From contig BQFW01000007.1 in the NCBI GenBank assembly GCA_020891255.1, positions 2,170,001-2,234,000 of the forward strand: a stretch of 64,000 bases of DNA. Direction: 5' to 3'. Within the stretch, counting starts at the first letter, position 1. The number at the start of each line of letters is the position of its first letter. Source of the stretch: Entomortierella parvispora E1425 (taxonomy: Eukaryota; Fungi; Mortierellomycota). The notes beneath the pieces were generated by a model. The model was not told the origin of the DNA, searched no databases, and saw only the letters and a program-made list of their open reading frames with translations. A program made the position numbers and the translations under genes. Of the stretch, positions 52,154 through 55,146 are shown one piece after another.

Positions 52154-55146
52154 CTAGAACTTCAGCTTCCGCCATTTGCTGGACCTGAGTGAAGAAAACA
52201 AGAAACAGAGCCAGTCTTTAGTCTCAGGAACCATCGAGGCGCTCCACATTTTGTAGTCGGAAATGGGCACTCTCAACAAAAAAACTAAAAAAAAAAAAAA
52301 ACCACAATACTTACTTTCCTTCGCCCTTGGTCGTCTCAAAACTACGCACACTGGCTGCGTCGTTGAACTGAGGCGTAGTTGGTCCACGGATGCGCTCCAT
52401 CAATTCTAATCGCTTACGCTCTCCTTCCTTGCCCTGCCAACTCTTCAGCAGAGATTTCATCACCTTCTTGTCTGGACTGCGCGCTCGTTGCAGGGCATTC
52501 AAGATACTCTGGGGCTCAGATGACGACAAGTCATTTTCCAACAAATACTTGGCCGATTCCAACTTGTTGAACAGCGCTGCTACCTCGAGCGTGTTCATTC
52601 CTTCCTTGTTGGGAATCATGGCCTCAGCTCCATTGTCCAGCAACAACTTGATCAGAGCCGGGTCATCGTGCTTCATCAACACATTCTGGAGGACAGTGTT
52701 CCCGTTCTCGTTCGTCAAGTTGACATTTGCTCCATAAGAGATCAACAGGTTCATGACTCCATAGGGCTGAACACCTTGCCAGGCTGTACGATGAAGCAAG
52801 GTCGAGCGAGAGTTGTTGCGTTGGTCGGGTGAAACACCATTGTTGAGATGCATCTGCACTGTCGCAAGGTCACCAAGCTCAGCTGCCTCCCAAATATCAG
52901 GAATCGCCTCTCCATATTCGTTGGTTCCTGCGGCGCCCGCAGTCGACATGACAGCCGCCTGGTATAAATCTGAAGGTGGGATAAGGAAGGCGGTGGATTG
53001 GAATGCCCCTGGCAAGATGAAGGGCGACTGTGGGATTTGCTGGTGAAGCAAAGGGGTGGCGATGGTCGTGCTGAGATCGGTCACAGTCTCGGAAGCGGAT
53101 GGTTGGTATGTCTTTTCAGAATTAGGGATTTCGACCTTGACAACTTCACTTCCTGTCATGAGTGTCGAAGCCCGAGAGGTGGTATCCAGAGGAGAGGCCA
53201 CTCCGTTGGACCCAGAAGGGCCCATGTATGACTCCATGAAGCTGAGCCCATCCATTGCAGTGCCATTGTCTGCTTGGACCTGGGCGTGAACCGTTTTCAT
53301 CATGTTTTCGTCCATGATTTCGTTTGGTCTTGTTGAACTATCAACAGGCATTCCAGTCACATTGTGGATCATGTTCACTCGAGTCTGCGAGGCTGATACC
53401 ACTGGTGGGTTGGAGGTGGTCCTTGGAGGAGGAGCATAGACTGTCGACGCTACATAGCCACCAGGAGCGCTGTGGTTCGTGCTGGATGGGGGTGGAGAGA
53501 TGGGTCCACCAGCTGGAAGCCCACCAAGTCCAGTATAGTTGTGCACCACATTGACTGCAAGCGGGGTAGGGAAGCCAGTGGGCGGAGCTGTGTATCCCTG
53601 GGTAGATCCATTGCTGAAGCTAGGAGGAGGCGCATATCCTGACACTGGCGGAGTGAATGTGGGCTGAGAGACGGAGCCGTTGGAGGAGGGAGGTGGGGGA
53701 GGAGTAAAGCCAGTTTTGGTGACGGGACTGTACTGACTTTCAAAAGGGGAAGTGGGGCTCGGAGGGTTGTACGGCTGCTGCTGCTGCTGCTGAAGCGATT
53801 GCTGCTGCTGCTGAGGATAGACAGACTGTCGGGCGAGCGTCCTGTTTCCGGCCAAAGGGTGGTCCGTGAACCGTGCATCCCCGGGTGAGGAGGGTGATTG
53901 GACTGGAGGTGTCACAGCCGTTGCGGCGCCGTTGGGTGCGCCGTTGGTTGCACCGTTGCCCGCGCCTGTGTTTTGTTTTTCACTCCAGACATTCTCCACA
54001 CCGGTTCTGAACGCATTGCCTGAACTACCGAACGCTTTCCTATTTAAAGACAAAACAATCGTTAGAGCTCCTTGTGGAAAAAAAGGTGGGCCTAATAAGA
54101 GGAACAAGAGGCAGAATATGCTGCTAACGTACTTCCACGAAATGACCTTGGTAGCCGCTTCCTCCTGCAGATGGCGCACGCCTTGGTAAAGACAGAGGTC
54201 GACCAGAACTTTGAGTTCGCTGCTGAGCAACCTGCCGCTCTTGTCCTGTCGTGTGCTGACCACAAATGGCGGCGCGCCCCACTTGTGTGTCTCGGTCATC
54301 CTCTCAATTGTGTCCATATCGGATCCAAACGTGTGAATCTTGATGCCGTTCATCTTTAGCTGGCGCAACATTCTCTTTTTCAAGACCCAGAGCTCGTTGG
54401 AGGAAAGAGTGTCGGCCTTGGTGATGATGGGGACGAGACTGACGCGTTCGTGGATCATCTTCATGTAGAGAATATCAATGGGCTTGAGCTCGTACAGCAC
54501 AAAGTAGAAAGCACAGGTTGGCAGCGTATGGGCACGCGAGCCAGCAATAAGGAACCAGGCCAGCTGGGCTGAGGGAATAGCAGGAGAAAAGATGGAGGTG
54601 ACCGTGTGTAGGTGATGGTTCAGGTAGTCGTCGGTCATGGTGAGGGTCGTGGAGGGATTGATGGTGGATGAATAGCCGGGCATGGTGATGAACGCCAGGT
54701 CTCTGGCGGGGATGCTGACCTTTGGAGGCAACAGGTCCATGGGGTCATCAAAGGGCGAGGTCTTTTGACCTTGGGACAGGACAGGGCCAGCATGGACATT
54801 GACGGTAGGGAGTTGAATGGAGGGGATGTTGGCGGATGATGCAGAGGAGACAGGGCTGGGGATGACTTCCTCAGTTGGTTCATTAGACTGGACATTGGAG
54901 AGGGTGTTGACAAAGGTGTGGATGAAGGAAGACTTGCCGACGCCCACATCGCCGAGGAGCAAGAAACGGAGCGATGCAGCAGAGGTAGCAGTCCGCTCCG
55001 GGTCCAAGGCAGCGTCTGTCAGGAAGTGGAAGGGAGAGAGAAAGGATGAAGATTAGTGAGGAGGAAGGACGGATGACTGACCTTCGTCGGGGTTGTCTCA
55101 TTAGTTATGCACACATACCTCTCTGGTTGGACGAAGAAGTGGTCAT
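52154..55146 (-). CDS. Septin-like GTPase domain + Pro/Gln-rich linker + ankyrin repeats, 4 exons
   Basis: Exon 1 MTTSSSNQR(D). G1 LLGDVGVGKSSFI, G3-equivalent TMPGY, CAFYFV..LKPIDILYMK.IHERVSLVPIITKADTL (septin signature), PPFVVS. C-terminal ankyrin repeats (IWEAAELGDL, TLLHRTA, GANVNLTNENGNTVL, GMNTLEVAA). Last exon SSKWRKLKF*. Confidence 0.85.

Follow-up and report, generated by a model that had tools for sequence, protein, structure and literature searches.

Gene structure and transcript evidence

We analysed a window of 64,000 nucleotides (nt) from Entomortierella parvispora E1425 (contig BQFW01000007.1, positions 2,170,001 to 2,234,000 of the forward strand), in which a minus-strand gene joins a septin-type GTPase (G) domain to ankyrin repeats through a long linker. 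The spliced coding sequence is join(55146..55119, 55015..54133, 54039..52315, 52184..52154), and its three introns are all of the GT..AG type (Table 1). One open reading frame (ORF) of 898 amino acids (aa), at 52311..55007 on the minus strand, spans G1 through the ankyrin domain without any stop. Exon 1 is required because the frame of exon 2 contains no ATG. An orthologue, P0001, agrees with the gene model across intron 2 and at the C-terminus, and it reads VITWKKAFG across the junction, which confirms the removal of intron 2. Because this intron is in frame, a prokaryote-style ORF reads through it and gives the stretch YVSSIFCLLFLLLGPPFF..., and gene callers of that style reading through it or stopping close by account for many "septin" fragments of 270-350 aa in metagenome-derived protein sets (P0086-P0098). 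The last nine residues of the query, SSKWRKLKF, match the C-terminus SSKW[LR]KLKF common to about 25 orthologues of the same paralog (paralog A, see below), so the limits 52154-55146 proposed in a preliminary description of the locus are exact. Intron 3 also carries a run of about 15 T bases near 52290.

A search for RNA sequencing runs of the species itself listed none. Transcript evidence came from a Logan contig, L002 (SRR7005491, 3229 nt), which represents the second paralog (paralog B) in a related species. It contains an uninterrupted 838-aa ORF with both domains, together with the 5' untranslated region (UTR), the linker and the 3' UTR. Alignment with a genomic locus that is 92% identical to it, L003, showed gaps of 152, 100, 88 and ~263-296 nt, each GT..AG, and a CT..AC gap in the 3' overlap that corresponds to the spliced intron of an antisense PLDc_N gene. 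Since introns are removed in L002, including that of the antisense gene, the contig was assembled from mRNA, and the paralog B fusion is one message. Two of the intron positions, after about codon 9 and codon 304, coincide with introns 1 and 2 of the window gene. The antisense PLDc_N gene is small and convergent, and the 3' end of the paralog B mRNA overlaps it (L002:2872-3102 on the minus strand, L003:6223-6341); in Linnemannia and Podila, a PLDc_N gene is found close to paralog A too.

These data decide whether a neighbouring septin-like GTPase gene and ankyrin gene were simply read as one by annotation. The linker is indeed poorly conserved and of low complexity, and some relatives are clearly over-fused models, such as P0043 with its 6PF2K neighbour. 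However, the stop-free ORF from G1 to the ankyrin repeats has its counterpart in at least 60 orthologues, in which the frame is open through the linker, the linker shows nonsynonymous divergence well below the synonymous level, and the spliced mRNA contig covers both domains of paralog B. The single mRNA of paralog B and the open linker frame rule out a two-gene artefact in practice, and we rejected it as having a negligible probability. Separate transcripts for the two parts, which the preliminary description had named as an outcome that would speak against a fusion, were not seen for paralog B. That this is one spliced Mortierellaceae gene encoding a septin-type G domain, a linker and ankyrin repeats can be stated with high confidence.

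Table 1. Features of the septin-ankyrin gene and its upstream neighbour in the window
Feature	Position	Strand	Remarks
Septin-like/ankyrin gene, whole coding region	52154..55146	-	4 exons, 888 aa
Exon 1	55119..55146	-	ATG, MTTSSSNQR and base 1 of codon 10
Intron 1	55118..55016	-	103 nt, GTATGT..CAG; frame kept on splicing
Exon 2	54133..55015	-	septin-type G domain, aa 10-304
Intron 2	54132..54040	-	93 nt, in frame, GTACGT..TAG
Exon 3	54039..52315	-	opens with the disordered linker, then ankyrin part
Intron 3	52314..52185	-	130 nt, GTAAGT..CAG
Exon 4	52154..52184	-	final base of Lys879 codon, SSKWRKLKF, stop
G1/P-loop GDVGVGKS	54930..54953	-	aa 31-38; read from sequence
G3 position TMPG (TMPGYS)	54675..54686	-	aa 120-123; Thr for Asp
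G4 TKAD	54411..54422	-	aa 208-211; [TAS]K[AS]D in all orthologues
Disordered linker	52935..54039	-	aa 305-672, rich in Pro/Ser/Thr/Gly/Gln
Four ankyrin repeats	52527..52904	-	aa ~683-808; Pfam, AlphaFold2 and PDB match
Degenerate fifth capping helix pair and terminal basic helix	52386..52514	-	aa ~813-855
Phosphatidylinositol transfer protein (PITP) gene, animal-type	55835-57181	+	PF02121, 5e-49 for last large exon 56684..57181

Domains of the predicted protein

The G domain matched Pfam Septin (PF00735) at 58.8 bits against a cut-off of 26.2, with only profile positions 115-190 of 280 aligned; chytrid relatives of the same clade matched positions 4-268 at 111 bits. Other GTPase families in the Pfam scan stayed below threshold and matched the P-loop only. 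The best sequence matches in the PDB were the septins SEPT11, SEPT8 and SEPT2 (1e-13 to 2e-14). An AlphaFold2 (AF2) model of the G domain, built from a 41-sequence family alignment, reached a predicted local distance difference test score (pLDDT) of 71 and a predicted template modelling score (pTM) of 0.71. In a Foldseek search of the PDB with this model, septins made up all of the best 50 matches. VIA-align placed 34 septin entries at Z scores of 13.1-17.7, with about 200 residues aligned at 20-26% identity, and the best non-septin was YsxC/EngB at Z 12.8, with EF-Tu and IIGP1 at or below this value. The nearest ESM Atlas clusters were all septin, and helix alpha6 is retained in the model. 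The G domain is thus septin-derived, as the preliminary description had recognised from its G1 and G4 motifs and the LKPIDILYMK segment, yet it lacks several of the features that define septins by the criteria of Auxier 2019 and Pan 2007.

The nucleotide-binding motifs are partly intact. G1 reads GD[VI]G[VI]GK[ST] in nearly every orthologue with a complete N-terminus, with Arg for Lys in three, and the segment LKPIDILYMK..HERVSLVPIITKAD (spliced aa 185-211) includes G4. At G3, T120 aligns under the Asp of DTPG in canonical septins and in chytrid and Mucorales relatives, and lies directly after strand beta3 in the model. This Asp belongs to DxxG, the consensus Mg2+-binding motif of P-loop GTPases (Pan 2007). 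Thr occupied its position in 51/51 aligned family rows, covering both paralogs, which indicates that the Asp-to-Thr change is ancestral and fixed; the loss of Asp noted in the preliminary description therefore holds for the whole family.

Several further elements of septins are missing. No conserved switch-I Thr was found in the family alignment, where the sole candidate column reads G/T/V/A. The septin "P.GH" trans-loop, with its invariant His and the adjoining Arg-finger position, is deleted in the alignment (YFVLY-ELKPID vs YFISPxGHGLKPLD); in some septins an Arg finger lies next to this His (Delic 2024). Parts of the Sep2 and Sep3 motifs defined by Pan 2007 (DxR[VI]HxxxYF[IL]xP and GxxLxxxD) are kept on either side of the lost loop as ..RAH..FYFV, in which H172 is invariant, and ELKPID. 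The beta-meander RxYPWG..VEVEN..H, comprising Sep4 "WG" and the septin unique element of the same classification, is absent in the alignment; the AF2 model has no strands there, and only ~9 residues separate beta6 (PFVVS) from alpha5. The motif [YFH]PWG occurred in 0/10 family rows and 0/79 other non-core rows, as opposed to 22/33 canonical rows. Three G-interface residues, R360, W364 and H374 in Cdc3 numbering, are conserved in all septin groups (Auxier 2019). We also found no alpha0 or polybasic region in the 25 residues before beta1, 2 of which are K or R. The family has in addition a nearly invariant motif, DDP[ML][DG]L[LM]PPKV..PAR[DE] (~54699-54749, aa 99-115), which adjoins the switch region within a long G1-G3 insert just before beta3 and has no counterpart in canonical septins.

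The linker of 368 residues is composed of 14% Pro, 12.5% Ser, 11% Thr, 9% Gly and 7% Gln, with 9% charged residues. It leads to an ankyrin domain that exceeded the Pfam cut-offs for Ank_2 (45.7 bits), Ank_4 (47.1 bits) and Ank_5 (34.2 bits) and had ankyrin-1/2 as its best PDB sequence match (1e-41). AF2 modelling of the C-terminal 214 aa (pLDDT 88.7) gave four ankyrin helix pairs at pLDDT 96-98, followed by a fifth pair that forms a cap and by a terminal helix. The helices of the cap and terminal region are H149-158, H164-172 and H176-191, and PDKK..K.LL..WQG is conserved in this region. Structural look-alikes gave no clue to a binding partner, as the PDB and Atlas matches were generic (ankyrin-1/2, designed ankyrin repeat proteins (DARPins), p19INK4d-like). 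The protein ends in the ankyrin repeats and a short basic tail, and not in a septin-type C-terminal extension (no coiled-coil predictor was run). All of this agrees with the linker of about 350 aa, the four or so repeats and the lack of a septin-type C-terminal coiled coil that had been described before. The tail carries a net charge of +5 over 10 residues, with Trp, Leu and Phe among them, and ends in SSKWLKLKF in paralog A and in ..RFNLKTMRAAAPSMSNLFGRK in paralog B. We considered an amphipathic helix in the tail and rejected it, since the hydrophobic moments are low (<=0.3) in the tails of both paralogs.

Nonsynonymous and synonymous differences per site (pN/pS) were computed against the Gryganskiella orthologue, for which synonymous sites are saturated (pS 0.62-0.76). 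The values are 0.10/0.62 (G domain), 0.24/0.76 (linker) and 0.028/0.74 (ankyrin domain). Identity to paralog B was 63%, 21% and 79%, respectively; within paralog A the linker is 40% identical, and the ankyrin domain shares 96% identity with that of Gryganskiella. The G domain is not decaying but under strong purifying selection, and the ankyrin module is the most constrained part of the protein. Its very high conservation suggests a conserved binding partner.

The motifs allow two readings of catalysis. Since G1 and G4 are intact, guanine nucleotide binding is likely kept and nucleotide is probably still bound. With the Mg2+-water Asp, a conserved switch-I Thr and the trans-loop all lost, GTP is probably hydrolysed slowly, if at all. 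Catalysis would then be impaired, and from its residues we consider the domain a likely candidate for a pseudoGTPase as Hussain et al. 2023 (PMC10731463) use the term. Such impairment had been suspected in the preliminary description, and the family-wide loss of the G3 Asp and the unconserved switch-I Thr strengthen the suspicion. Alternatively, the domain could be an active switch in which Thr and other residues replace Asp, and nucleotide cycling gates ankyrin binding or self-assembly. The intact G1 and G4, a Thr that does not drift in any of the 51 rows, the low pN of the G domain and the near-invariant DDPxxLxPPKV..PAR segment by the switch region would all fit such a switch. On the other hand, the G3 Asp is part of the consensus Mg2+ motif DxxG (Pan 2007), no switch-I Thr is conserved, and the trans-loop position beside the His, which in some septins holds an Arg finger (Delic 2024), is deleted. 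We regard an active switch as unlikely.

Relatives, phylogeny and interpretation

A full-length search returned 64 relatives that combine PF00735 with ankyrin repeats, all from Mortierellaceae. They come from Gryganskiella, Mortierella, Dissophora, Gamsiella, Linnemannia, Podila, Haplosporangium, Benniella, Entomortierella, Modicella and Lobosporangium, so that the fusion is kept in every Mortierellaceae genus sampled. The closest is from Gryganskiella, with 73% identity; beyond Mortierellaceae, the full-length search matched vertebrate ankyrin-1 only, through the repeats. Many Mortierellaceae genomes hold two copies, and the family consists of two old paralogs, A and B, with the window gene being paralog A. 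Very long annotated fusions also occur (P0043, P0121, P0137), with 6PF2K/His_Phos, glycosyltransferase, or GST and histidine-kinase parts; in the case of P0043, at least, the model seems to have swallowed the adjacent gene that is present in L003. The earlier statement that the architecture is not a described family stood in part. We found no description of a septin-ankyrin architecture in the literature searched, and the supplements of Delic 2024 and Auxier 2019 contained no Mortierella entries and no accession of the relatives found here. However, public annotation already contains the fusion: at least 64 predicted proteins have it and bear automatically assigned names, for example "septin 2" and "Septin-14".

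The combination of a nucleoside triphosphatase (NTPase) with C-terminal repeats also raised the possibility of an immune sensor akin to NOD-like receptors (NLRs) or signal transduction ATPases with numerous domains (STAND). The domain order is superficially that of an NTPase followed by ankyrin repeats, fungal NLRs often carry such repeats, and E. parvispora has many NLRs (PMC12258605). Nevertheless, the NTPase is septin-type and gave no NACHT or NB-ARC match in the Pfam scan. The ankyrin repeats number only four and are the most conserved part of the protein, both towards Gryganskiella and between paralogs, and the genes form two syntenic conserved paralogs instead of an expanded variable set. 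Furthermore, the NLR study itself set septin orthogroups aside (PMC12258605). An NLR-like sensor is very improbable, and we rejected it on account of the septin-type NTPase and the few, highly conserved repeats.

A profile search of 1.84 billion representatives gave 1984 matches at E<1e-3, and the best matches after the fusion family were fungal "septin-domain-containing" proteins. They included Mortierellaceae paralogs without ankyrin repeats (P0102-P0106), chytrid proteins (Podochytrium, Quaeritorhiza, Irineochytrium, Siphonaria), proteins of Mucorales and Endogonales (Phycomyces OAD76306.1, Pilobolus, Halteromyces, Chlamydoabsidia, Jimgerdemannia) and those of Ascomycota (Tuber, many Pezizomycotina of ~720 aa with PF00735 and DUF6780, Saitoella, Nadsonia). 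Among the profile-search representatives, the ankyrin domain of the family occurred in truncated family members only. A profile of the Pezizomycotina relatives retrieved 572 "Septin + DUF6780" proteins, and the 120 that were listed included no protein with the name AspE. The P-loop of the non-core relatives reads GD[ST]G[IV]GK[TS], with D at position 2 in 78/79 rows as opposed to E in canonical septins.

Trees of 122 G domains (FastTree) and of 55 G domains (IQ-TREE, LG+C20+F+G4) agreed. The canonical septins in them were animal sequences only, 33 and 8 respectively. These animal septins were split from a fungal non-core clade at 100/100. Inside this clade, the ankyrin fusion family was monophyletic (100/100) and had a long stem, with 1.5 substitutions per site; the Mortierellaceae proteins that lack ankyrin repeats (P0102/3/5/6) formed its sister group (98/93). 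The window gene fell within paralog A (96/93), adjoining the Gryganskiella orthologue. By this topology, both the fusion and the replacement of Asp by Thr date to the stem of Mortierellaceae, ahead of the A/B duplication. The fold did not group the GTPase with non-septin families, an outcome that the preliminary description had considered, and the trees placed it in a non-core fungal clade of septin-like proteins. Like the query, the other members of this clade have a GD P-loop, a long spacer from G1 to G3 and a trans-loop that is shortened, and they lack a YPWG beta-meander. They differ in keeping DxxG at G3 (DTPG; 60/69 rows) and in having no ankyrin repeats.

Other domains occur in this clade as well. 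Several chytrid members (among P0119, P0121, P0140 and P0184) have an N-terminal SH3 domain, and the Pezizomycotina members carry DUF6780 (PF20571). Different fungal lineages seem to have attached different partner-binding modules to a non-core septin-like G domain.

Among known septins, the non-core Group 5 (A. nidulans AspE, K. petricola AspE, N. crassa ASP-1/ASP-2) likewise comprises fungus-specific septin G domains outside the Cdc3/10/11/12 core. Its members resemble the query in lacking a strong C-terminal coiled coil and in having interface motifs that diverge, and they do not serve as stoichiometric subunits of filaments (PMC8801916, PMC6323724, PMC3653863). However, no ankyrin domain has been described for Group 5, which keeps W364 and H374 (Cdc3 numbering; Auxier 2019) and is marked by D at Cdc3-264 and H at Cdc3-295 (Pan 2007). 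Compared by these published signature residues only, the query has L in ELKPID and E at G4+6, and its whole beta-meander is gone. Septin pseudoGTPases (Cdc3, Cdc11/Shs1, the SEPT6 group, Spn7) also show substituted catalytic or pocket residues and have a structural, not an enzymatic, role. They nevertheless differ from the query in being filament subunits with intact G and NC interfaces, and most have lost the switch-I Thr and not the G3 Asp (Hussain et al. 2023, PMC10731463). Bhr1 of Dichomitus squalens, called a possible pseudo-NTPase by its authors, is another lineage-restricted fungal fusion of a degenerate septin-like G domain with deviations at G1 and G3 (PMC13532241). Its partner is a Zn(II)2Cys6 DNA-binding zinc cluster and its lineage is Agaricomycetes; the likeness is one of description.

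These comparisons bear on whether the protein is a non-canonical septin that binds to core filaments, or becomes part of them, through G or NC interfaces, with the ankyrin repeats recruiting cargo. The fold and the Pfam family are septin, helix alpha6 is kept, and KpAspE, itself non-core, interacts with Cdc11 in a two-hybrid system (bioRxiv 10.1101/2024.05.23.595546). In contrast, the protein has no alpha0 or polybasic region, its "P.GH" trans-loop is deleted, and the RxYPWG beta-meander with its His is absent, although the missing interface residues are conserved in all septin groups (Auxier 2019). Furthermore, the family lies outside the clade of canonical (animal) septins at 100/100 and has no septin-type C-terminal coiled coil. 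The loss of alpha0, trans-loop and meander argues against canonical incorporation into septin filaments, which we regard as improbable for this G domain. A filament subunit is, in our estimate, distinctly unlikely, and the earlier proposal of an adaptor that recruits cargo to septin filaments found no support, given the missing interface elements and the separate clade.

The explanation that we favour for the whole, and that we consider probable though far from certain, is a lineage-specific fusion whose stripped-down, septin-derived G domain probably binds a guanine nucleotide with little or no hydrolysis and stays out of canonical filaments. Our best guess at its role is a non-hydrolysing, nucleotide-binding scaffold acting through its ankyrin domain, a mechanism that is less likely than not when taken by itself. 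The G domain may serve as a nucleotide-loaded fold or a self-association module, the disordered linker would tether it to the ankyrin domain, and the latter would bind the conserved partner. The basic tail with its Trp, Leu and Phe residues might conceivably help to hold the protein at a membrane or the cortex.

Several points weigh against this explanation. Mg2+ could still bind with Thr in place of Asp at G3, and the strict invariance of this Thr speaks for a role and not for simple decay, so the domain may prove an active, if unusual, GTPase. AspE-type non-core septins contact core septins via extensions (bioRxiv 10.1101/2024.05.23.595546), and by analogy this leaves room for some non-canonical attachment to septin filaments. 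Confidence in the AF2 model of the G domain is only moderate, and the G1-G3 stretch in it is uncertain. The tail does not appear to be a strong amphipathic helix, which weakens the case for membrane contact. Finally, exon 1 and intron 3 are predicted from comparison and splice signals.

In a wider and still more speculative proposal, which we think rather unlikely as a whole, the fusion would be one branch of an undescribed, fungus-wide clade of septin-derived GTPases outside Groups 1-5, acting as nucleotide-loaded adaptors and not as filament subunits. Its marks would be the "GD" P-loop and the lack of beta-meander and alpha0. As partner modules, chytrids would use SH3, Mortierellaceae ankyrin repeats, Ascomycota DUF6780 and Agaricomycetes perhaps Zn2Cys6, and in Mortierellaceae the G3 Asp-to-Thr change might lock one nucleotide state.

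Septins have been studied almost only as filament-forming cytoskeletal subunits, and here the G domain lacks filament interfaces and a core catalytic residue. The septin-ankyrin fusion has nevertheless been kept across a whole fungal family, in two paralogs and under strong purifying selection. The gene is a natural test of a septin G domain away from filaments and of nucleotide binding by a G3 without Asp. Mortierella alpina is transformable, so the idea is open to experiment. It draws attention, too, to a wider and little explored range of non-core septin-like proteins among early-diverging fungi, which may belong within Group 5 or outside it.

Genomic neighbourhood

The PITP gene stands head to head with the septin-ankyrin gene, with ~690 bp between them (55147-55834), and genes for PPP4R2 and Pescadillo lie downstream of the latter. 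The same succession of genes (E2F/DP, PITP, septin-ankyrin, unnamed gene, ..., PPP4R2) is found in Gryganskiella, Linnemannia, Mortierella alpina and Podila (L001, L004, L005, L006). A promoter shared with PITP was considered as a functional clue and rejected. The pairing carries no specific functional weight because a whole block of 6-7 genes is conserved, and not the pair alone.

The downstream neighbour (49010-51330, minus strand) encodes an acidic, low-complexity protein without a Pfam match, and corresponds by position to a syntenic gene of 377-494 aa that has only a faint GAT match. Runs of (CT)n/(GA)n and (CA)n/(GT)n flank the septin-ankyrin gene at ~55370-55480 and ~51600-51700.

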